64,000 nt of DNA, from the sequence record NC_048054.1; one strand, written 5' to 3'. The position numbers and the translations under genes are program-made. Below the pieces are notes generated by a model. It was not told where the DNA came from, made no database searches, and was given only the letters and a program-made list of their open reading frames with translations. This document shows, in pieces, positions 12,233 to 32,115 of the stretch (position 1 is its first letter; every line of letters begins with the position of its first letter).

Positions 12233-13003
12233 ATGAGCAACGTTGATAAAACAATGCCAGAAGGTCGCTGGGAGTTTAATGAGCCAGTAGCTTCTGTATT
12301 CGATAACATGCTGCAAAACTCAATCCCATCGTATGACCGTATGCGTGACCTGACGTACCGTCTTGGTCGCCAGTTCGTAACACCCGGTTCGGCCATTGTC
12401 GATCTGGGTGCATCACTCGGTCGTGCTATCGAACCGTTCTGTGCTGAGTTCGGTGAGTATCGTTATCTCCATGCTGCTGATCGCCCTGAGCCAGATCGTG
12501 AAGTAGGTAACCTGTACTGCTGCTACGAAGTCGCACCTGCGATGCTTGAGCGTCTGCGTGAAAACCCTGTACTGAAAACTGCTAAAGCGCAAATCAGTAG
12601 CGAGTCGCTGGTGGAAGTAGACACGTTCCGCTTCGACGAGCAGGTTGAGTGCTCACTGATTCTGTCTGTGCTCACTCTCCAATTCACGCCGATTGAACAT
12701 CGTCAGCACATTCTGGAGAAAGTGTACGACTCGTTGCAGAAAGGCGGCGCGTTTATTCTGGTTGAGAAAGTGTTGGGTGACGACAACTTCCTCGACCGTC
12801 TGCTGGTAGACACCTACTACGGCATGAAAGGCGATAACGGTTACTCGCAAGAATCTATTGCGGCTAAACGTAAGTCCCTCGAAGGCGTACTGGTGCCTGT
12901 GAAAGCTGCATGGAACGAAGAACTGCTGCGTAAAGCTGGCTTCGACCGTGTAGAGTGTTTCTACCGCGACCTGAACTTTGCTGGATGGATCGCAGTCAAA
13001 TAA
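12233..13003 (+). CDS. cmoA: CmoA-like carboxy-S-adenosylmethionine synthase
   Basis: WEFNEPVASVFDNMLQNSIPSY, DLGASLG, TLQF, VEK, NGYS...AKRKSLEGV, AGF...NF match the CmoA pattern including the carboxylate-binding KR arginine. Confidence 0.85.
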   Translation: MSNVDKTMPEGRWEFNEPVASVFDNMLQNSIPSYDRMRDLTYRLGRQFVTPGSAIVDLGASLGRAIEPFCAEFGEYRYLHAADRPEPDREVGNLYCCYEVAPAMLERLRENPVLKTAKAQISSESLVEVDTFRFDEQVECSLILSVLTLQFTPIEHRQHILEKVYDSLQKGGAFILVEKVLGDDNFLDRLLVDTYYGMKGDNGYSQESIAAKRKSLEGVLVPVKAAWNEELLRKAGFDRVECFYRDLNFAGWIAVK

Positions 13004-13014
13004 GGTAAAACGAA

Positions 13015-14070
13015 ATGAGCGTAAGTGGTGATATTTATAACATCCCCCAACCGTTCGCCATGTATTGTGGCAACTGTGAAACTCGTGCTCAGGCAAAAGT
13101 GGCCTCAGGCACAATTGAATGGGCTCCAGAGAAAGTCTGCTGCGTTGTTGCAGACGATAACGGCCTGTTCCCTGATGTTCCCCACGTCAACATCGCAAGC
13201 GTCCACGCTACAGATGCGCGTACTCTCGTAATCGGCTGTGCGCCGTTTGGCGGTAAGATTGACGAGCACATGGACCGCACTATTCGCAGTGCTATCTATC
13301 GTGGTCTGAACGTCGCTGCTGCAATGCACAATCGTCTGGCCGATAATGCCGAATACGTTGCGCTGGCTGAACAGTACAACGTCAAGCTGTATGACTTCCG
13401 TCATCGCCCTGATGCGTACCCTCTCGGTACTGGTGAGAAGCGCAAAGGCATTCGTCTGCTGACTGTCGGCACTGATAGCTCTTGCGGCAAGAAGTTCACG
13501 ACGCTGACGCTGCACCGCGCACTGAAAGAGATTCACGAAGACACCGTGTTCTGTTCAACTGGACAGACTGGCTTCCTGATCAGCAACTGTGGTATCAACA
13601 ACGATACTCTGGTGGCTGACTTCCTTGCTGGCGCTGCCGAGTCATTATCGCCTGACGGTCCTGCTGATCGTATCTATCTGATCGAAGGTCAAGGTGCTAT
13701 CACTCACCCAGCTTATACTGGCGGCAGCATGAGTCTGATTGCTGGCTCGCAGCCTGACTACTTCATTATGTGCCACGCGTACGGACGTAAGAACCAGCTC
13801 GGTGTTAAACGTGCGCCGAATTTGATGTTCGAATTGAGCGCCAATATGGACGCTGCTGCAATTCACGGCCTAACTCCTAAGTATCTCGGTATCAGTGTCA
13901 ACTTCTCTGAAAGCGGCCTGACGATTGCGGAGCAGAACGAAGTGATGTGCGATATGCAGCATATGTACGGTCTGCCTGTATTTGACCCGTCGCGTGATCA
14001 AGAGTATATCGCAGAGATCGCCAATAAGCTCCAGCAGGAAGCAGAGAGCAGGAGCAATGCGAATGGCTAA
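13015..14070 (+). CDS. DUF1611 / DgcN-like P-loop protein
   Basis: TLVIGCAPFGG, MHNRL, RLLTVGTDSSCGK, TGQTG, VADFLAGA, IEGQG, HPAY, QPD, GISVN, LPVFDP. Confidence 0.85.
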   Translation: MSVSGDIYNIPQPFAMYCGNCETRAQAKVASGTIEWAPEKVCCVVADDNGLFPDVPHVNIASVHATDARTLVIGCAPFGGKIDEHMDRTIRSAIYRGLNVAAAMHNRLADNAEYVALAEQYNVKLYDFRHRPDAYPLGTGEKRKGIRLLTVGTDSSCGKKFTTLTLHRALKEIHEDTVFCSTGQTGFLISNCGINNDTLVADFLAGAAESLSPDGPADRIYLIEGQGAITHPAYTGGSMSLIAGSQPDYFIMCHAYGRKNQLGVKRAPNLMFELSANMDAAAIHGLTPKYLGISVNFSESGLTIAEQNEVMCDMQHMYGLPVFDPSRDQEYIAEIANKLQQEAESRSNANG

Positions 14071-14932
14071 ACATCCTCTTCGCAAGCTGTTTGAACAGCA
14101 CGTAAAGAAAGAGGTCAAAGCCAAAGAAGTGGCCGTTCTGCTTTCGAGCGGCCTCGACGGTTTGGTTAGCGCACTCGCCGCGCATGATCTCGGCATGAAG
14201 GTACATGCCTTTACTTTCCAGATGGGCGACAACCAGAGCTTCGATAGCAAACACGCTGCAATCGTCGCACAGAAGATGGGCTGGGAGTTCACGCTCGTCA
14301 AAGTGCCTACCTCTGACAGTGCTATCGCTCAGGGCTGGAAGACGCTGCATAAAAAGTTCCGCTGCATTAAGAAGCGTGACTATGAGTGTGCGTACCCTAT
14401 GGTGTATTGCTACAAGGCGATCAAAGAAGCTGGGTTTAAGTACGTGCTCAGTGGTCTGGTGGCAGACGGTTACTTCCTGTATAACCGCAATACGCACATT
14501 CAGAAAGTAAGCGGCCCGCACTCAGTCGCTGAAAAGTATCACGCGTACCGCACCGAATACTTCCGACCGTGGATCAAAGACGGTAAGAAGTCTCTCGGTG
14601 TTGACGGGTATAACCCAAGCGGTATGCTGCAACACGAAATGCTGTGTGACCACTTCGGCCTTGTTCACGTTAACCCGTGGATGCAGCCGAAAGTATTTGA
14701 TTACTTCATCAAGTACACATGGCAGGAACTCAATCAGCCCAAGCAGAAACAACCTATTACAGAAGCATGGGCTGACCACATCGCTATTGTAGGGCATCGC
14801 CCGCATCGCGGATATCAAACAGAAGCTGGAGTACCTGCGTACTTCGAACGCTTACTGGATAATCCTGAGATCAACTTCAACGGGCGCAAGCGTATCATGG
14901 ATGTTGCCCGTGATTGGTCAACGAGGACGTAA
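14063..14932 (+). CDS. Asparagine-synthetase-like ATP-dependent amide ligase (synthetase domain only)
   Basis: PP-loop VAVLLSSGLDG, VLSGLVADGYF, NP(W) motif; no glutaminase domain; AGGAG SD supports ATG 14063. Confidence 0.7.
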   Translation: MAKHPLRKLFEQHVKKEVKAKEVAVLLSSGLDGLVSALAAHDLGMKVHAFTFQMGDNQSFDSKHAAIVAQKMGWEFTLVKVPTSDSAIAQGWKTLHKKFRCIKKRDYECAYPMVYCYKAIKEAGFKYVLSGLVADGYFLYNRNTHIQKVSGPHSVAEKYHAYRTEYFRPWIKDGKKSLGVDGYNPSGMLQHEMLCDHFGLVHVNPWMQPKVFDYFIKYTWQELNQPKQKQPITEAWADHIAIVGHRPHRGYQTEAGVPAYFERLLDNPEINFNGRKRIMDVARDWSTRT

Positions 14933-14933
14933 C

Positions 14934-15554
14934 ATGTTAGTACACATCATTGACGGTGGCGTAGGCTGCAATTATGTAGCTGAAAAATTGCGTGAGTCGA
15001 ATATCAACTGTCGCACACACGCTCCAAACAATCCGCGCATTCGCGCTCAGTATGCTCCTTACCCTTCACTGTCTATGGGCTTTGAGGCACAGGAGATCGA
15101 GAAACATATCGGTAACGTGCTGGGCACCTATCGCGGACTGTTCCTGATCAGTAGCTACGTCGGCTCTCTTGTCGCACGTAGCATGATTGATCAATGCGGC
15201 CAGAGCCATAACATCATCTATTGCGATGACTTGCAGTGTGGCTCAACGCCTGTTGTTGCTTCCTCAATTTCTGTAAACATCTACAAGAAGCAACGGCAAC
15301 TCGGACGTATCGCTGGGCGCATCAAACACTTCGACCTTGACCACGAATTTATTATCGCTGATAAGTCAGTGCGGTTCGCGTCAGGTTCGGAGTTCGATGA
15401 ACACGGCGCGCGTGAAGAACTGGACGATACGCCTAAGTTCTTATCGAGTCCGTCAATGATTGTTGCAGCACACAAACTCGGTGTGAAGCGCAGCATGTAT
15501 CACAACTATGCAGGGTTGGTGCGAGAGTTCCTCGAAAAGCGCCAGCAGCAATAA
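14934..15554 (+). CDS. Divergent Asp/Glu-racemase-like protein (putative)
   Basis: N-terminus HIIDGGVG...APYPSLS...LFLISSYVGS parallels MurI IGVFDSGVGG...PYG.KS...IVIACNTAS; catalytic CNT not conserved. Confidence 0.35.
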   Translation: MLVHIIDGGVGCNYVAEKLRESNINCRTHAPNNPRIRAQYAPYPSLSMGFEAQEIEKHIGNVLGTYRGLFLISSYVGSLVARSMIDQCGQSHNIIYCDDLQCGSTPVVASSISVNIYKKQRQLGRIAGRIKHFDLDHEFIIADKSVRFASGSEFDEHGAREELDDTPKFLSSPSMIVAAHKLGVKRSMYHNYAGLVREFLEKRQQQ

Positions 15555-15834: not shown

Positions 15835-16293
15835 ATGATGAACCTGTTTTCTATTTTAAAGCAGCAAGTGAAGAAAGCGCTATCTACCGAAGCGAACCAC
15901 GAGCCTGAGGTTCGCTCTCTGTTTGACTGGCGTTACTCTGTTGAAATCAAAGGCCAGATGTATATCGTCGGTAAGACTGGCGCTAACACCTGCTTCTATA
16001 TTGAGCCAGGTACTTCTGAGCCTATCGCTTGTTACCCTGATGCGTTACTCGAAAAGATCGACGAGTGGGGAGCGAGCAAGTACGTGTCGTATTCGATCTT
16101 CTTCAAACGCTTCGATAGCCCTGTTGCCGAGAACATCAAAACTCTCGAAAAGGCAATGAGTGGTAAACCGAAGTCCTTTAAGAAAGGCTACTTCATCTGT
16201 GGCGTGACCCCGAAAGGCAAGCGTGAGAAACTCTATCGCTTGCAGCAAGGTCTGTCTGGTATGCAGTGGGTAGCTGTGGAGAAACAAGCATGA
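15835..16293 (+). CDS. Hypothetical protein
   Basis: 152-aa ORF, GAGG SD. Confidence 0.55.
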   Translation: MMNLFSILKQQVKKALSTEANHEPEVRSLFDWRYSVEIKGQMYIVGKTGANTCFYIEPGTSEPIACYPDALLEKIDEWGASKYVSYSIFFKRFDSPVAENIKTLEKAMSGKPKSFKKGYFICGVTPKGKREKLYRLQQGLSGMQWVAVEKQA

Positions 16294-18353: not shown

Positions 18354-19196
18354 ATGACCGTAATCAGTCCAATCCGTTATCAGGGCAATAAGCGAAGCCT
18401 TATCCCTCTTATTCTTGAGCACACACCAAGCGTACAAGACTGTCCGCGTATGGTCGATGTGTTTGGTGGTAGCGCTACTGTCTGCGCAAACATGCCACAG
18501 AAGTTTCGCGTGTACAACGAGCTTAGTCCTCAGGTGTTTGAGATCGTTAAGATGCTGGTGGAACAAGACCCGAAGAAAACTCTCGGTCAAGTCAAGCGTC
18601 TGGTCAAACACTGGTGCCTGACAAACAGCAACGAAGCGAACTATGATGCGTTTCGAACTGTCGTCCAGAAGAAGCGTACACCGATATTGCATTACGTTGC
18701 ACACAGACACGCACACTCGAACATGCTGCGCTTCAATCAGCAGGGTGTGTACAACGTGGGATTCGGTGATCGTGGTCTGATTGGAAAGTTCGACGAGCTG
18801 GAGCATGAACTCACTACCTTCCACAGTCACATGCAGGGCGTCCACCTGACGAACATGAAGTACGGTAAGTTGCTGAGTCGCTTAGGCCATCAACTGAACT
18901 GCAACACGTTCTGTTATTTCGACCCGCCTTATCTGGCGAGCGGCGCAATGCAGTATGGCAAGTGGACTGAAACGAACGAGCGTAACCTGCTTGCCACTTT
19001 GGAGCAACTCAATCGTTTAGGCGTACCGTGGATGTTGAGCAACGTTACTGAGCACCGTCACTTCTCGAACGACTTGCTAAAGCGTTGGCTAAAGAAACAC
19101 GCGACTACCGTGCTGTACCCAAACAAAAGCTATGCGATGAACAACGGCCAGAGCGGCTCGCATGGTACTGTTGAAATTCTGGCAATGAACTACTGA
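18354..19196 (+). CDS. dam: DNA adenine methyltransferase (Dam/D12 class)
   Basis: SPIRYQGNK, VDVFGGSATV, YNEL, FCYFDPPY, WMLSN. Confidence 0.9.
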   Translation: MTVISPIRYQGNKRSLIPLILEHTPSVQDCPRMVDVFGGSATVCANMPQKFRVYNELSPQVFEIVKMLVEQDPKKTLGQVKRLVKHWCLTNSNEANYDAFRTVVQKKRTPILHYVAHRHAHSNMLRFNQQGVYNVGFGDRGLIGKFDELEHELTTFHSHMQGVHLTNMKYGKLLSRLGHQLNCNTFCYFDPPYLASGAMQYGKWTETNERNLLATLEQLNRLGVPWMLSNVTEHRHFSNDLLKRWLKKHATTVLYPNKSYAMNNGQSGSHGTVEILAMNY

Positions 19197-21638: not shown

Positions 21639-22029
21639 TGATGCCTCGTCAGATGAAATCCGCCGTTACTACGAGCAGATTCATCGTGATGCCGAAGCGA
21701 TCATGCAGCAGGTGTGGGCGCTTCGTGGTTGGACTGTGCGTTGGGAATGGCACAATGGCATTTGCGACGACTGCGAGTTTGTCTTTGACGAGACAGGCAA
21801 GTGTCGTGGCACTAAGTCTGACTGCATCCCACAGCAAATGGGCATAGCTGATCGCATTGACGAGCTAAAGCTGTTTGTTTCCCACACCAAGAAATCTGTA
21901 AAGATCAGCAACAAGGGCGATGCTAATCCAGTTGAAGGTAAAGGCCGTAATCTTCGGCTTGCTTATCTCGACTGGTTGCTCAACGTCGAAAAGAGAAAAG
22001 CGGAGGAAAGAACGTGCGCTGCACCTTAA
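21619..22029 (+). CDS. Hypothetical protein
   Basis: ATG 21619 in frame with track ORF 21598. Confidence 0.5.
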   Translation: MYRQLSDDASSDEIRRYYEQIHRDAEAIMQQVWALRGWTVRWEWHNGICDDCEFVFDETGKCRGTKSDCIPQQMGIADRIDELKLFVSHTKKSVKISNKGDANPVEGKGRNLRLAYLDWLLNVEKRKAEERTCAAP

Positions 22030-22535
22030 ACGAATTACCGATTAACATCACTCAGGCTGAACACATCATGGCGAGCGTGTTTACTCTTGCTGGTGCGTCA
22101 AAGTCAAAACGCCGTGCGACTGCCGCAATGTTGATTCACTTCCATAATGGTTTTCCTACCATTATCAGCAGCGGCGTGAACGGTACGGAGCCGGGTGCAA
22201 GCAACGTCATGGAAAACGAAGACCTGACGTTATCGCTCGACACCGTTATTCATGCAGAGGTGAACTGCCTCAATCGCATGGAAGAGTACAGCATGTGGGC
22301 TGACGAAGCAGACATTCTGTTTTGCACCGATTCGCCATGTCCTAACTGCTTGGCTGATCTCGAAGCCGAAGGCGTTAAGACCGTTGTGTACGCGCGTGAG
22401 TATCGCCTGACTGATCATCTGGACGCATCTCCCATCAAGATGTTCTGTCTGGATATGGACAGCGTTGTCCAGCGTATGCAGCACGGCATCGACCGCATCA
22501 AAGAAGTGATCGCAACAACACCAGCGTCTAACTAA
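22014..22535 (+). CDS. Deoxycytidylate (dCMP) deaminase
   Basis: SGVNG, HAEVN, TDSPCPNC zinc-deaminase motifs. Confidence 0.85.
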   Translation: MRCTLNELPINITQAEHIMASVFTLAGASKSKRRATAAMLIHFHNGFPTIISSGVNGTEPGASNVMENEDLTLSLDTVIHAEVNCLNRMEEYSMWADEADILFCTDSPCPNCLADLEAEGVKTVVYAREYRLTDHLDASPIKMFCLDMDSVVQRMQHGIDRIKEVIATTPASN

Positions 22536-25849: not shown

Positions 25850-26199
25850 TGCCTCCTGTAATTCGTTTCAACGAGCAAACCCGTGAACTGCTGAAAAAGA
25901 CTTTCGGCATTGATTCACCTTTCATTGTCGTTCGCCGCGAGCGCATCATCGAAGACGATAAGTCTTTCGGTGATCGTGTTTATTTGAACAACGGCATTCA
26001 TACCGTGACTGTGCCTAACGTACAGGGTCTCGACTTCGGCGATAAGCTGTATCTCGCCGAAGATATGGAAGTGTATGAGTGGCACTCGCACTTCGGCCTT
26101 CATCCTAACATTCATCATTCTGTAAGCAATAACCAGAAGACTGCGCTCTCGTTCGGCCTTCATCCTATTATCTACCACAAAGACAGTCGGAACTCTTAA
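25849..26199 (+). CDS. Hypothetical protein
   Basis: 116 aa, TAATG coupling on both sides. Confidence 0.5.
   Translation: MPPVIRFNEQTRELLKKTFGIDSPFIVVRRERIIEDDKSFGDRVYLNNGIHTVTVPNVQGLDFGDKLYLAEDMEVYEWHSHFGLHPNIHHSVSNNQKTALSFGLHPIIYHKDSRNS
26092..26167. repeat. 16-bp direct repeat, 60 nt apart
   Basis: TTCGGCCTTCATCCTA at 26092 and 26152, encoding FGLHP twice. Confidence 0.6.
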
Positions 26200-27305
26200 T
26201 GAGCAAACAACAAACTCTTGATCTGCGCGATCCAAATCAGTACGAACTCTACTCGTTGCATTGCGTGGACGAGCAGTACATCAATCTGGGCAACGCTATC
26301 ATGATGCACGGTACTGACGAAACGGACCCAGGCCGCACCGAAGATACATGGCGCACTCTGATTGGTATTGGCTTCCAGTTGTCTAACACGCTGATCGCTT
26401 TCCCTGCGCTGGTGTCTGCGCGTAAGAACTGGTACGCTGCTGTAGATGAAATGTGCTGGATGGCGCGCGGCGAAACGAACATCGGCAGCCTCAATTCCAA
26501 AATCTGGAACGAGTGGGCAGACGAAGACGGCGAGTGCGGTCCTATCTACGGTCTGATGTGGCGCATGTGGCCTGATATCAAAACGTTCCCGACTATTGAG
26601 TCGATGAAAGAACGTCAGATCAGCGATGCTGAAATCGAACGTATCTCCAAAGAGATCAATCGCATGAAAGCCGCTGGTTATACCGAAACACAAATGGCCG
26701 ATGGCCGTGTGTGCTACGAAGGTACGATCGACCAGTTCGCTGATGCTCTGCGTCAGGTGATGAATCGCAGTCGTTCGCGCCGCATTCGCGTTCAGGCGTA
26801 CAACCCTGCGTATCTCCACATGCAGGGTCTGCCTCCGTGTCACACCGAGTTTGAGTTCAACGTCACTAAGCCGACGCTGTACGAAGTTGCTCAGATGGAA
26901 GCGCGTCAAATGGCACCTGCCGAAGACACGTTGCATATCACTGTGACCATGCGTTCCAATGATGTGTTGCTCGGGCGTCCCTTCAACATCATCGGCTATA
27001 GCGCGATGCACCAGATGATCGCCAAGTGGGCTGGCCTGAACGTCGGTAGCTTTACGCTGAACACTACCAACACTCACCTGTATACGCATCACTTCGAAGC
27101 GTTTGAAAAGCAACGTGAGCAGTGGGCAGTTCTCGCAGACAACATGAAACGCACAGGCGAACCTGTTGTCTATCCTATGCTGGAAATCAGCGACGACATT
27201 CTCGGCCTGACGCCAGAAGAGTTGCTGGACAACGCCAACGCAGAATGGTTCCAGCTTCTCGATTATGCACCATCACCAGCGGTTAAGGGACGTGTGACCA
27301 AATGA
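26199..27305 (+). CDS. thyA: Thymidylate synthase
   Basis: EMCW, IWNEW, GPIYG, SRR, LPPCH, RSNDVLLGRPFN (dUMP-type Asn), HLY. Confidence 0.92.
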   Translation: MSKQQTLDLRDPNQYELYSLHCVDEQYINLGNAIMMHGTDETDPGRTEDTWRTLIGIGFQLSNTLIAFPALVSARKNWYAAVDEMCWMARGETNIGSLNSKIWNEWADEDGECGPIYGLMWRMWPDIKTFPTIESMKERQISDAEIERISKEINRMKAAGYTETQMADGRVCYEGTIDQFADALRQVMNRSRSRRIRVQAYNPAYLHMQGLPPCHTEFEFNVTKPTLYEVAQMEARQMAPAEDTLHITVTMRSNDVLLGRPFNIIGYSAMHQMIAKWAGLNVGSFTLNTTNTHLYTHHFEAFEKQREQWAVLADNMKRTGEPVVYPMLEISDDILGLTPEELLDNANAEWFQLLDYAPSPAVKGRVTK

Positions 27306-29273: not shown

Positions 29274-29984
29274 ATGGCAAAAACTGCTATCAAAGCAAAG
29301 GACGGGAAAAAGAAAAAGAATGACGGACTAAAGTTTGAGTTGAAGAAACTCAACTCCGTCGCTCAGTTGAAAGGTGCGGCGTACAACCCGCGCTTCATTA
29401 CAGACAGTCGCCTGAAAGCGCTCGAAGGTTCTTTGGGTAGTTTCGGCGACCTGTCTGGTATCGTGTTCAACAACAACGTCAAATCGGGCGTGTTGATCTC
29501 TGGCCACCAGCGCCTGAAATCAATCGAAGGCTGGAAGACTCGTATCGAGATCCAGAAGTCTGTTGACAAGCACGGTACAATCGGCCTGGGCTATATTCAC
29601 GCAACGCATCCGAAGAAAGCTGATAAGGTGATCAGCATTCCTCTGCGTGTCGTGAACTGGACCGATAAGAAAGCGGAGTATGCTGCGAACATCGCGGCGA
29701 ACGCTCATGGCGGTGAGTTCGACAACAAAAAGCTCGCCAAGCTGGTTGAACAACTCGACCTCAATACAATCAAGCCTCAACTGCTTGGTCTTGACCCGTT
29801 AGAAATTCGTGGTCTGCAAGCCAAGCTGAAAGTTCAGGCCGTTGTGCAGGACGAGAAACGTGCTGGCAAGACTACTGGCCAGATGAACGGTAGTACCGGC
29901 AAGTTCAATGAGTACAGCCCTGATGATGTGGGCGAAACTCTGAACTGCACCTGCCCGCGTTGTGGATTCAAGTTCGAGGGATAA
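29274..29984 (+). CDS. ParB/Srx-like domain protein
   Basis: AAYNPRFI, LISGHQRL, NIAAN...GEFD, C-terminal CPRCGFKF. Confidence 0.75.
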   Translation: MAKTAIKAKDGKKKKNDGLKFELKKLNSVAQLKGAAYNPRFITDSRLKALEGSLGSFGDLSGIVFNNNVKSGVLISGHQRLKSIEGWKTRIEIQKSVDKHGTIGLGYIHATHPKKADKVISIPLRVVNWTDKKAEYAANIAANAHGGEFDNKKLAKLVEQLDLNTIKPQLLGLDPLEIRGLQAKLKVQAVVQDEKRAGKTTGQMNGSTGKFNEYSPDDVGETLNCTCPRCGFKFEG

Positions 29985-29985
29985 T

Positions 29986-32115
29986 ATGATCATCAAGCCG
30001 CCTACGATGAAGGAAATCAACAAGCTAGATAAACCCTGGCGTGGTATGAGTTTCTTCGCAGGTTGCGGTGGTTCTTCTACCGGTCACAAGATGGCCGGTA
30101 TCAACATCGTGCTGAGTAACGAGTTCGTTGACCCAGCGCGTGAGTCGTATGAAGCAAACCACCCGACAACCAAAGTGCTGCCGCATGACATTCGCCGTTT
30201 AGACCCAGGTAAGTTGTTACGCTTCGCTGGTCTGGCTAAAGGCGAATTGGATTTACTTGACGGTAGTCCTCCTTGCTTTACCGAAGACACTATCATTCAT
30301 ACAGCAGACGGCATGAAGTTCATTTCGGACATGAACGTCGGCGATAAAGCGATGACAAGTATTGGTCAGTATCTTCCTGTGTATGACACTATGGTTAGAC
30401 CATATGTCGGTACCATGCACAAGATTGAAACGCTGATCAGTAGCAACAACGCAACGCCTGAGCACCCGTTCTTCGTTCGTCGTCCGCTTGAATCTGGTGG
30501 CTTCTCTGACCCGTTCTGGTGTGATGCTAAAGACGTGCAGGAAGGCGACTTGGTTGGTACACCACGAACTACTCCTGATATCGGTGCTGATGCAGTACAT
30601 GCGCAAATGGAACAACTGCCAAAGTTGATTCAGCAGTGGGTGTGCATCCCTGAGTTCTGGTGGATGGTCGGTCACTGGTGTGATCGCGGTTCAATCGAGA
30701 CTGTTAGTGGCGTAGAAGTTGTTAGCTTCGAATCGCACACCAGCCTCGAAAATGCGATGATTGAGCAAGCGTTTGATGCGCTTAAACTTAGCAGTCTGAA
30801 TCGTATCGACCGCATGACCGCACAGCGCAAAACGTTCCGCACTGTTATCGACGCCGAGCTGGTGCAGTTCCTGCGCCGCTTCGTCAGTGCTGGCAATAAC
30901 ACGTTCTCTCGCCGTCTGCCTGCTTTGGTGTTCCACCTGAGCACCGAACTGAAACGTCAATTCATTCTCGGCTGTGCTGGGCATGACTACGTTACAGCGA
31001 TGGGCACTGGTCTTGCTATCACGTCTGCAAGCAAACGCTTCCTGCTTGAGCTGAACTACCTGTGCTGTTCAGCTTTCAATCGTCCTCTGTTTGACGGTAT
31101 GATTTGGGGTGACGTGTATTTCGGTAACGCGTTAACTCCTCGTGAGCGTAACAGTTCGCGTGAGCATCTCGGCTATCTGTTCCTGCAGGAAGAGCACAAC
31201 TTCTTCCACGAGTTCGATAAAGAAGACCCGAACCTGTGGGTTGAAGTGATTGAGAACCTTGCGTATCAGGCTACTTGTGACGTCTATAACTTCTCTGTTG
31301 AAGTTGACGAAACCTACGTGGCTAATGGTACTGTGGTGCATAACTGCAAAGGCTTCTCGACTGCTGGCGTGAAAGAAGAAGGCTGGGGCAAAGAAGTTAA
31401 GTACAGTGATAACAAGTATCAGCAGGTTGATGACCTGTTCGATCAGTATTGCCGTATGCTGGAAGGCATGATGCCGAAAGTGTTCACTGCGGAGAACGTT
31501 AGTGGTCTTGTTAAAGGAGCCTCGAAAGGTTACTTCCTTGAGATCATGAAAGAGTTCGACAGGATTGGGTATTACGTCCGAGCGCCGCTGCTTAATGCTG
31601 CATGGCTTGGTGTGCCTCAGTCCCGTGAGCGTATCATCTTCATGGGTGTACGCAAAGACGTAGCACACGCTCTCGGCTATAAGAGCAATCAAACCGCTGT
31701 GCCTGATGTTGTGCCGTGTGAAACAATGGCGTTCCTTGCTGATGCGCTACCGCACATTCAACGGTATAAGTCCACGAAGAAAGATATCATTACGTATCTG
31801 CCTGCGATGAACGGACCGATGCCTACGATTACTGCGGCTGATGCAATCGCATATGAGACTGCACGATTCTCGTCTGCGGGTTTCATTGAAGACAACAAAG
31901 GCCATCGCCGTAAACTGACCATCGACGAACTCAAAGTTGTTTCTGGTCTGCCGTCTGATTATAAGCTGGTCGGCAAGTTTGAAGAACAATGGGAACGTCT
32001 TGGCCGCATCTGTGTGCCAGCAATGACACACGCCGCATCCAAAGCGCTTATCGAACACGTCTTGATTCCTTATGCGAAGAAGCGTAAGAAGAAGCCTGGC
32101 GATATCTTTAAGTAA
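29986..32115 (+). CDS. C5-cytosine DNA methyltransferase homolog with intein; candidate carboxymethyltransferase
   Basis: Motif I FAGCGG, IV GSPP-C(KGFS) after splicing, VI ENV, VIII QSRERIIF; motif X reads GRICVP instead of GN(S/A)VP. Confidence 0.85.
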   Translation: MIIKPPTMKEINKLDKPWRGMSFFAGCGGSSTGHKMAGINIVLSNEFVDPARESYEANHPTTKVLPHDIRRLDPGKLLRFAGLAKGELDLLDGSPPCFTEDTIIHTADGMKFISDMNVGDKAMTSIGQYLPVYDTMVRPYVGTMHKIETLISSNNATPEHPFFVRRPLESGGFSDPFWCDAKDVQEGDLVGTPRTTPDIGADAVHAQMEQLPKLIQQWVCIPEFWWMVGHWCDRGSIETVSGVEVVSFESHTSLENAMIEQAFDALKLSSLNRIDRMTAQRKTFRTVIDAELVQFLRRFVSAGNNTFSRRLPALVFHLSTELKRQFILGCAGHDYVTAMGTGLAITSASKRFLLELNYLCCSAFNRPLFDGMIWGDVYFGNALTPRERNSSREHLGYLFLQEEHNFFHEFDKEDPNLWVEVIENLAYQATCDVYNFSVEVDETYVANGTVVHNCKGFSTAGVKEEGWGKEVKYSDNKYQQVDDLFDQYCRMLEGMMPKVFTAENVSGLVKGASKGYFLEIMKEFDRIGYYVRAPLLNAAWLGVPQSRERIIFMGVRKDVAHALGYKSNQTAVPDVVPCETMAFLADALPHIQRYKSTKKDIITYLPAMNGPMPTITAADAIAYETARFSSAGFIEDNKGHRRKLTIDELKVVSGLPSDYKLVGKFEEQWERLGRICVPAMTHAASKALIEHVLIPYAKKRKKKPGDIFK
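30274..31344 (+). mobile_element. Intein (357 aa) with degenerate LAGLIDADG region
   Basis: CFTEDT start, ATPEHPF block B, VYNFSV...VVHN end, Cys+1 is the MTase catalytic Cys; decayed blocks WMVGHWCDRG and FILGCAGHD. Confidence 0.9.

Follow-up and report, generated by a model that had tools for sequence, protein, structure and literature searches.

What does a jumbo phage do with a carboxy-S-adenosylmethionine (carboxy-SAM) synthase gene that is packed against genes for a DUF1611 protein and an amide ligase? This question is raised by Dickeya phage vB_DsoM_AD1 (AD1; MH460463.1 / NC_048054.1), a jumbo myovirus (genus Alexandravirus; genome of 261,658 bp) infecting Dickeya solani. The analyzed DNA, here called the window, comprises 64,000 nucleotides, bases 1-64000 of this genome, and window coordinates equal record coordinates. 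An earlier note on this DNA had proposed that four tightly packed open reading frames (ORFs) at 12233-15554 form a DNA hypermodification operon, labeling them as a CmoA homolog, a DUF1611 protein, an AsnB-type synthetase without glutaminase and a racemase-like protein. All four ORFs are present, co-directional on the + strand, with the second and third overlapping by 8 nt. The first three labels stood, while the fourth gene proved to belong to an orphan family. On the evidence below, we consider it likely that AD1 encodes a cytosine hypermodification of its own DNA of the CmoA-CmoX-CmoY type, extended by a fourth enzyme.

The corresponding pathway was described for Synechococcus phage S-B43 by Yang et al. 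(Nat Commun 2025; PMC12783734). In S-B43, CmoA makes carboxy-SAM, CmoX makes 5-carboxymethylcytosine (5cxmC) at GC sites and CmoY, which is homologous to AsnB but lacks the amidase domain, performs ATP-dependent glycine ligation; the virion DNA holds the glycine amide. Their survey yielded 5,615 candidate CmoX, 4,257 CmoA and 2,251 ligases, with several ligase clusters predicted to use other amines. The cyanophage CmoA, methyltransferase and amide ligase route mentioned in the earlier note therefore exists, and its description of the AD1 modification as not recognized from described pathways was overstated, since the core route is published and ligases for other amines had already been predicted there. 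Because AD1 encodes homologs of CmoA, CmoX and CmoY, the core of our finding is, by homology, a member of this published system. The article makes no mention of Dickeya, Erwinia, DUF1611, acetyltransferases or inteins, and its supplement contains neither Dickeya nor Erwinia (PMC12783734).

Among solved structures, the best match of the AD1 methyltransferase AD1_048 was SpCmoX from S-B43 (8YF3; 8e-54), followed by M.HaeIII at 3.6e-16; the C5-methyltransferase model TIGR00675 was matched at 1e-32. The HMMER alignment with 8YF3 comprised three stretches (residues 21-98, 462-565 and 629-693), and the protein carries GSPPC at 93-97, ENV at 503 and QSRER at 545. In the third stretch, Arg674 (ERLGRICVP) is placed on R350 (ERVGRMVPP) of SpCmoX at the motif X position, in agreement with the motif X arginine reported in the earlier note. 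R350 stands where M.HhaI has Asn-304 and makes contact with the carboxymethyl group, and the SPPC catalytic motif was a CmoX criterion in Yang et al. (PMC12783734). Judged by these alignments, AD1_048 is a true CmoX homolog. It resembles the engineered M.MpeI N374K, as far as PMC12783734 describes that enzyme, in combining a C5-methyltransferase fold predicted to use carboxy-SAM with a basic residue in place of the motif X asparagine, but differs from it in being natural and in carrying arginine rather than lysine. SpCmoX prefers GC, whereas M.MpeI prefers CG (PMC12783734).

The AD1 CmoX gene differs from its S-B43 counterpart in harboring an intein at the catalytic cysteine. The junctions (GSPP/CF...VVHN/CKGFSTAG, with slashes at the splice points) have the canonical Cys1, HN and Cys+1 residues, and TIGR01443, a model for the intein C-terminal region, matches aa 432-454. 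Cys455, the residue right after the intein, is the motif IV catalytic cysteine of SPPC. For sequence comparisons, the two CmoX extein parts were treated separately. The same insertion site is occupied in a 766-aa methylase of an unrelated metagenomic contig (L102:3688-5988; comparison loci are numbered with the prefix L), and the CmoX genes of L019, a 216-kb IMG/VR contig, and of Pseudomonas phage PaBG are free of inteins. AD1_047, encoded next to CmoX, matched phrog_620 (2.7e-32), and its homologs (44-48% identity) precede CmoX in L019, L100-L103 and PaBG. ParBc proteins were found on many CmoX contigs by Yang et al. (PMC12783734); AD1 resembles S-B43 in having a ParB-like neighbor as well as in the absence of CmoB.

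The CmoA homolog AD1_016 matched phrog_4752 at 3e-80 and TIGR00740 at 3e-42, with 144.8 bits falling under the NCBIfam equivalog cut-off of 193.3, and aligned over its full length (residues 11-256) with E. coli CmoA (4GEK; 4.8e-30). In the latter alignment, R213 of the AKRKSLE stretch, the arginine singled out in the earlier note, falls on the arginine of E. coli ISQKRSMLE, which we take to be the residue contacting the carboxylate of carboxy-SAM. The ratio of nonsynonymous to synonymous substitution rates (dN/dS) for AD1_016 was 0.03-0.09. Its identity to the experimentally active SpCmoA is 30%, and SpCmoA itself is active although only 28% identical to E. coli CmoA (PMC12783734). Neither GenBank nor RefSeq annotates a CmoB in the window, and phmmer with CmoA against the full set of 181 ORFs of 100 aa or more in the window returned no second CmoA relative, consistent with the absence of CmoB noted before. 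Compared with the E. coli CmoA/CmoB pathway for the wobble base uridine-5-oxyacetic acid (cmo5U), AD1 shares the carboxy-SAM synthase family, conserved arginine included, but has no CmoB in the window, and its acceptor enzyme is a DNA methyltransferase homolog.

How phages supply CmoA with prephenate was posed as a question by Yang et al. (PMC12783734). A chorismate mutase (CM_2) gene lies between CmoX and CmoA at L100:4622-5089, and a DAHP synthase gene at L011:10943-11806 follows the ligase beside the Cmo cluster; by their annotation, these genes would raise the level of prephenate, the CmoA co-substrate, and they lend indirect support to the predicted synthesis of carboxy-SAM by the CmoA homologs. 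No chorismate mutase or DAHP synthase gene is shown in the AD1 window.

The third core protein, AD1_018, aligned with SpCmoY over the full length (276 aa) at 34% identity (5e-52). Its match to the 517-position asparagine synthase model TIGR01536 (5.5e-16) covers positions 223-387 only; the protein is thus confined to the synthetase half and therefore has no glutaminase domain, as proposed earlier. The ligases fall into two subfamilies, both about 34% identical to SpCmoY. Subfamily I (AD1, pEa_SNUABM_3, L009, L011 and L013; 56-85% mutual identity) is marked by the nucleotide-binding loop LLSSGLD followed by G or A and by an insert of about 20 aa relative to SpCmoY. Subfamily II (L019 and L100-L103; 55-70% mutual identity) has the loop LLS, S or G, then GVDS, and is 35-40% identical to the ligase of phage Y3. 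DUF1611 proteins pair with both subfamilies and divide along the same line. The AD1 ligase is therefore distinguished from that of S-B43 by belonging to a subfamily with an altered loop and insert that pairs with DUF1611.

The putative fourth enzyme, AD1_017, contains both DUF1611 domains (PF17396, DUF1611_N, and PF07755, DUF1611). It matched the DgcN model NF041892 at 6e-84, with 281.8 bits against a cut-off of 480, and is approximately 40% identical to 7XRJ over 320 residues (2.8e-51), with GTD..GK, TGQTG and EGQG stretches in common; these matches agree with the DUF1611 label given to the second gene. The phage homologs in L003 (pEa_SNUABM_3) and L019 reached 307 and 355 bits against NF041892, likewise under the cut-off. 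The one characterized reaction of the DUF1611 family is the conversion of acetyl-CoA and D-glutamate to N-acetyl-D-glutamate (name of NF041892; EC 2.3.1.312, cited in PMC11747546), and the D-glutamate catabolic pathway of DgcN and DgcA (EC 5.1.1.25) in marine bacteria is described in PMC10845958. AD1_017 has both domains in common with DgcN but is phage-borne, scores under the equivalog cut-off and occurs in a DNA-modification context rather than in catabolism. Judging by the neighbors scanned, its partner is a CmoY ligase, joined in relatives by a pyridoxal-phosphate-dependent alanine-racemase-like protein, rather than a DgcA-type racemase; no DgcA-type N-acetyl-D-glutamate racemase was present among the scanned AD1 neighbors, DgcA not having been searched genome-wide. 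The possibility that the gene is a decaying remnant in AD1 was ruled out by an intact ORF, retention of all family-invariant columns and a dN/dS of 0.10-0.15. In the literature searched, DUF1611 had no link to DNA modification.

The case for DUF1611 as a pathway member comes from its neighborhoods. Among 50,697 phage records, the phage DUF1611 gene was found in 34 (24 phages), all AD1 relatives and always between CmoA and the ligase. In all loci examined (24 isolate phages and nine metagenomic contigs), phage-type DUF1611 lies at most one gene upstream of a CmoY-like ligase. The metagenomic homologs closest to it (41-54% identity) all come from contigs of phage type, where they adjoin such a ligase. 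The order is DUF1611, Ala_racemase_N protein, Asn_synthase in L009/L010 and L013, and CmoA, an 84-aa protein, a 398-aa protein, DUF1611, a racemase-like protein, ligase and DAHP synthase in L011/L012. L019 contains an uninterrupted block of ParB-like, CmoX (39% identical to SpCmoX, with ERLGRSVPP), DUF1611, ligase, CmoA and AD1_021-like genes, and L100-L103 hold the same set in slightly different orders, giving five compact clusters (ParB, CmoX, DUF1611, CmoY and CmoA) of varying arrangement. Every adjacent methylase has the SPPC motif and the arginine. DUF1611 and the ligase stay side by side even between proteins of 37-59% identity, across two cluster architectures and both ligase subfamilies. 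As a control, the 80 best bacterial-type DUF1611 metagenome loci (34-39% identity; flanks up to 6 kb on each side) included none with CmoA, CmoX or CmoY neighbors. On this gene-neighborhood basis, DUF1611 is a genuine, recurrent accessory of the Cmo DNA-modification system, and its earlier placement in the pathway is strongly backed. The arrangement of the four AD1 genes is not due to chance: the partnership recurs in divergent phages, and all four genes are under purifying selection (dN/dS 0.00-0.15 for AD1 and three relatives).

Among isolate phages, CmoA, the CmoX C-extein and the AsnB-type ligase co-occur in the same 48 Erwinia, two Dickeya, one Yersinia and two Pseudomonas PaBG records. 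The survey across other genomes suggested in the earlier note showed CmoA, in all phages examined, together with an arginine-bearing SpCmoX homolog. AD1_016, 018, 047 and 048 are common to AD1 and Y3 and absent from JA11, a related jumbo phage of Dickeya (Day et al. 2018, Table 5), and AD1_017 is unique to AD1 among these three (Day et al. 2018). The radical SAM protein AD1_267, encoded outside the window, is distributed like the Cmo genes, being present in AD1 and Y3 and not in JA11 (Day et al. 2018, Table 5).

In close relatives of AD1, the region between CmoA and AD1_019 exists in three nested forms, each found in eight phages. Variant A contains DUF1611 and the ligase (AD1, Alexandra and six others), variant B adds a 411-aa glycosyltransferase-like protein before DUF1611 and variant C further includes a 311-aa alanine-racemase-like protein between DUF1611 and the ligase. 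The inserted genes lie at L003:2534-3796 and L003:4824-5759 in pEa_SNUABM_3, with pEa_SNUABM_7 (L014) as a further example. The racemase-like protein matched alanine/serine racemase models at 3e-14 and 4QHR at 5.9e-08; the glycosyltransferase call is weak, based on a faint Pfam GT1 match, a PDB E value of 0.31 and an identity of approximately 25% to glycosyltransferases encoded by Xanthomonas phages. Neither gene occurs anywhere in the AD1 genome. Phages of the Y3 type (L004:3938-5733) keep CmoA and CmoX but have a different ligase (22-29% identical) and, instead of DUF1611, a 2-oxoglutarate-Fe(II) oxygenase (phrog_61, 2.6e-30), a cassette that suggests yet another adduct. At least one further ligase type exists in relatives (pEa_SNUABM_5, phB78 and others). 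Across the cassette forms, CmoA remains 77-99% and the CmoX C-extein 74-97% identical while the tailoring genes are exchanged. Between AD1 and pEa_SNUABM_33, the DUF1611 gene (L006:10001-11053 in the latter) has a synonymous divergence (dS) of 0.63, with 0.18 for CmoA, 0.08 for the ligase and 0.08 for AD1_019. This several-fold excess over the flanks indicates local recombination at the scale of a gene.

Two orphan genes accompany the system. AD1_019, called racemase-like in the earlier note, had no match in NCBIfam, PHROG, PADLOC or PDB at the sequence or profile level. Its detectable relatives are confined to a tiny phage family: 17 clusters were found at 57% identity or more, a hidden Markov model search of 1.84 billion representative proteins yielded five representative clusters, and a deeper alignment-based search for homologs added no new members. 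The AlphaFold2 model from 17 homologs was poor (predicted local distance difference test (pLDDT) 47), and Foldseek returned nothing at E<=0.001; the highest template modeling (TM) score, 0.46 to a glutamate racemase at E=0.29, was obtained with this unreliable model and is not evidence for such a function. We therefore dropped the racemase assignment. AD1_019 is 61% identical to Y3_021, from a phage without DUF1611, and homologs with 25-27% identity occupy the same place in pEa_SNUABM_5 and Yersinia phage fHe-Yen9-02. Where present in the jumbo-phage group of AD1, it is always the next gene after the ligase; homologs are absent from the eight variant B phages, which retain the ligase and AD1_021 (for example, MZ475896.1 at about 16.5-17.0 kb), and from the compact metagenomic clusters. 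PaBG gp305 (L104:5363-5974), a 203-aa hypothetical protein, has a similar post-ligase position, and profile comparison with AD1_019 detected no homology (hhalign probability 0.8%).

Homologs of the second orphan, AD1_021 (26-48% identity), are encoded directly beside CmoA or CmoY in L011, L019, L100-L103 and PaBG, where the order is ParB, CmoX, CmoA, AD1_021-like and ligase. AD1_021 was detected in 53 of the 50,697 phage records, all of them from the jumbo-phage groups in which CmoA and CmoX are found too. It had no family match in NCBIfam, PADLOC or a PDB profile search and an unknown family only in PHROGs; Foldseek against PDB and BFVD with a single-sequence AlphaFold2 model (pLDDT 65) retrieved the PaBG homolog only. 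Both AD1_019 and AD1_021 probably belong to the Cmo system. The S-B43 phage gave no match to either orphan or to DUF1611. The extent originally drawn for the locus, 12233-15554, holds the four genes but leaves out the co-travelling AD1_021 and the ParB-like AD1_047.

For AD1, we propose a pathway whose first three steps are modeled on the characterized S-B43 enzymes. AD1_016 would convert SAM and prephenate to carboxy-SAM. AD1_048, with the intein spliced out and accompanied by the ParB-like AD1_047, would then carboxymethylate C5 of cytosine in double-stranded DNA, its motif X arginine presumably selecting carboxy-SAM over SAM. In a third step, AD1_018 may adenylate the 5-carboxymethyl group and couple an amine as an amide. 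AD1_017 is predicted to work with the ligase, a role suggested by gene neighborhood only. For its reaction, we draw on DgcN chemistry and on the repeated pairing of DUF1611 with a racemase, which is seen in bacteria and separately in phages. We favor an N-acylation that targets an amino group either on the building block (an amine or amino acid) or on the adduct already attached to DNA. In that case, the modified cytosine would carry, instead of the glycine amide known from S-B43, an amino-acid amide on its 5-carboxymethyl group that is N-acylated and possibly of D configuration. In relatives, the alanine-racemase-like enzyme could make a D-amino acid, and a glycosyltransferase-like protein is also added there; AD1, having neither gene, would depend on host pools. 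Because an undescribed DgcN-type partner accompanies the gene set, AD1 DNA probably bears a cytosine adduct that has not yet been characterized. Its likely purpose would be to shield phage DNA from host nucleases; protection by 5cxmC was shown against HhaI (PMC12783734). The earlier idea that the phage makes 5-carboxymethyl-dC, amidates it and tailors the product with two extra enzymes is partly supported, by the homologs of all three core proteins and by the DUF1611 neighborhoods, but not for the fourth ORF, a real racemase-like gene being found only in relatives such as pEa_SNUABM_3.

Other readings of the same genes deserve comparison. RefSeq labels AD1_016 a 'tRNA methyltransferase', and CmoA has its classical part in cmo5U synthesis (PMC12783734), so the enzyme might feed carboxy-SAM to a host CmoB for tRNA wobble-uridine modification, tuning translation while its neighbors make a small metabolite. 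We regard this as very improbable, as the window has no CmoB, CmoA strictly co-occurs with an arginine-bearing SpCmoX homolog in all phages examined and the S-B43 system is experimentally DNA-directed (PMC12783734). A less far-fetched but still rather improbable reading is that AD1 runs the plain published pathway, making 5cxmC conjugated to glycine or another simple amine, with DUF1611, AD1_019 and AD1_021 as passengers; DUF1611 might, for example, act on host D-glutamate pools. The AD1 ligase is indeed about as near to SpCmoY (34%) as others of that broad group, bacterial DgcN homologs are catabolic enzymes and AD1_019 also occurs in phages without DUF1611. Such a passenger role is hard to reconcile with the DUF1611-ligase adjacency across divergent proteins, architectures and ligase subfamilies, with the bacterial-type control or with the finding that DUF1611 of isolate phages occurs only inside the Cmo cassette.

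Somewhat more plausible, yet unlikely, is an amide synthetase made up of two parts, DUF1611 and the ligase: the CmoY-like enzyme would do no more than activate the DNA-bound carboxymethyl group, and the DgcN-like protein would bind a D-amino acid and N-acylate it with that group, giving a D-amino-acid amide of 5-carboxymethylcytosine without an acetyl group. The DUF1611 stop overlaps the next start in AD1, L009, L019, L100 and L102, suggesting coupled expression; the known acceptor of DgcN is the alpha-amine of a D-amino acid; and an alanine-racemase-like gene stands between DUF1611 and ligase in variant C, L009, L011 and L013. The altered loop and extra insert of subfamily I ligases, as compared with the self-sufficient SpCmoY, would also fit. 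Against this, SpCmoY performs activation and amide formation alone (PMC12783734), DUF1611-paired subfamily II ligases keep an SpCmoY-like loop, and we found no DUF1611 protein known to use an acyl donor attached to DNA.

Our preferred reading, the Cmo pathway extended by an N-acylating DUF1611 enzyme, has weak points of its own. In AD1, 15 kb separates CmoX from the remaining Cmo genes, a two-locus layout unlike that of S-B43, and CmoX activity is predicted to depend on intein splicing. The nucleotide-binding loop of AD1_018 (LLSSGLDG) differs at two positions from that of SpCmoY (LLSGGVDS), although conservation of the variant across subfamily I marks it as a lineage trait rather than decay. 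With AD1_017 under the DgcN equivalog cut-off (282 versus 480 bits), its substrate may differ from that of DgcN, and so may the very type of reaction. Moreover, an N-acetylated alpha-amino acid cannot itself be the ligase amine, so that one would have to postulate a further amino group or attachment through a side chain. Several of the loci belong to jumbo phages that are related and syntenic, and not every neighborhood is therefore independent. Finally, the AD1 adduct is a prediction from genes, the literature found reporting neither modification nor restriction resistance. What speaks for AD1 as a Cmo phage nonetheless is its likeness to S-B43 in all three core proteins: CmoA (30% identity), CmoX (8e-54 to 8YF3, with the R350-equivalent arginine) and CmoY (34%, no glutaminase).

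The features discussed are collected in Table 1.

Table 1. Cmo-related features in the AD1 window and the evidence for their assignment.
Feature	Position	Strand	Evidence
AD1_016, CmoA homolog (predicted carboxy-SAM synthase), 256 aa	12233..13003	+	TIGR00740, phrog_4752 and 4GEK matches
AD1_017, DUF1611 protein of DgcN (D-glutamate N-acetyltransferase) type, 351 aa	13015..14070	+	NF041892, 7XRJ, gene neighborhoods
AD1_018, CmoY-type ATP-dependent amide ligase (predicted), AsnB synthetase domain only, 289 aa, subfamily I	14063..14932	+	SpCmoY, TIGR01536
AD1_019, orphan protein, 206 aa, directly 3' of ligase gene	14934..15554	+	no family match
AD1_021, 151-aa co-travelling orphan of CmoA/CmoX/CmoY clusters	15838..16293	+	neighborhood
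AD1_047, ParB-like protein, directly 5' of CmoX	29274..29984	+	phrog_620
AD1_048, CmoX-type DNA cytosine C5-carboxymethyltransferase precursor (predicted), 709 aa, intein-bearing	29986..32115	+	8YF3 match, Arg674
Intein within CmoX, Cys97-Asn454, 358 aa	30274..31347	+	TIGR01443, splice-junction residues

These genes are part of a single long + strand gene array spanning bases 1-44,333. A scan of 10.5-18.5 kb for promoters and terminators gave counts no higher than in shuffled sequence and was uninformative on operon bounds. The array also contains a Dam-family adenine methyltransferase at 18354-19196 (TIGR00571, 2e-29), a CMP/dCMP deaminase at 22014-22535 (GenBank annotation) and, at 26199-27305, a 368-aa thymidylate synthase exceeding ThyA models of roughly 264-296 positions.

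Phage clusters built on 5-hydroxymethyl-pyrimidines, as in thymidine hypermodification, install a C5 handle that is then elaborated on the DNA polymer by swappable tailoring enzymes, including amino-acid chemistry. The Cmo clusters follow a similar logic, with a pyrimidine C5 handle predicted to be decorated on DNA by cassette-like enzymes involving amino-acid chemistry, but their handle is a carboxylate forming amide bonds rather than a hydroxyl activated by phosphorylation, and the enzyme families are unrelated. It was not until late 2025 that 5-carboxymethylcytosine was recognized as a base occurring naturally in DNA, and the glycine amide is its single known downstream product. In the literature searched, we did not find the DgcN-like partner, the racemase- and glycosyltransferase-like extensions, the AD1_021-like gene, the prephenate-supply genes or an intein at the catalytic cysteine of CmoX.

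The system is present in cultured, easily grown Dickeya and Erwinia phages, in many of which the DgcN-like enzyme rides with the ligase. The tailoring cassette is the one point of difference among close relatives, which have a ligase alone, a ligase with DUF1611, further additions of a glycosyltransferase-like and a racemase-like gene, or another ligase with a 2-oxoglutarate oxygenase; they offer a natural comparison series for the discovery of new DNA bases by mass spectrometry. The locus provides the first non-catabolic context for the DUF1611 family and flags two orphan families as candidate pathway members. Tentatively, and with considerable doubt, we extend the proposal to a six- or seven-gene pathway (ParB-like, CmoX, CmoA, CmoY, DUF1611 and AD1_021-like proteins, with optional racemase, glycosyltransferase-like and prephenate-supply functions) that might, in a widespread subgroup, build a D-amino-acid-containing or N-acylated, sometimes glycosylated, amide on 5-carboxymethylcytosine, with the cassette swapped among related jumbo phages. 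If true, D-amino-acid chemistry would be seen here for the first time on a base of DNA, and cassette swaps among closely related jumbo phages would diversify the adduct. Such adducts would be relevant to the evasion of restriction and DNA-sensing defenses, to the sequencing behavior of phages and to tools for site-specific DNA labeling.

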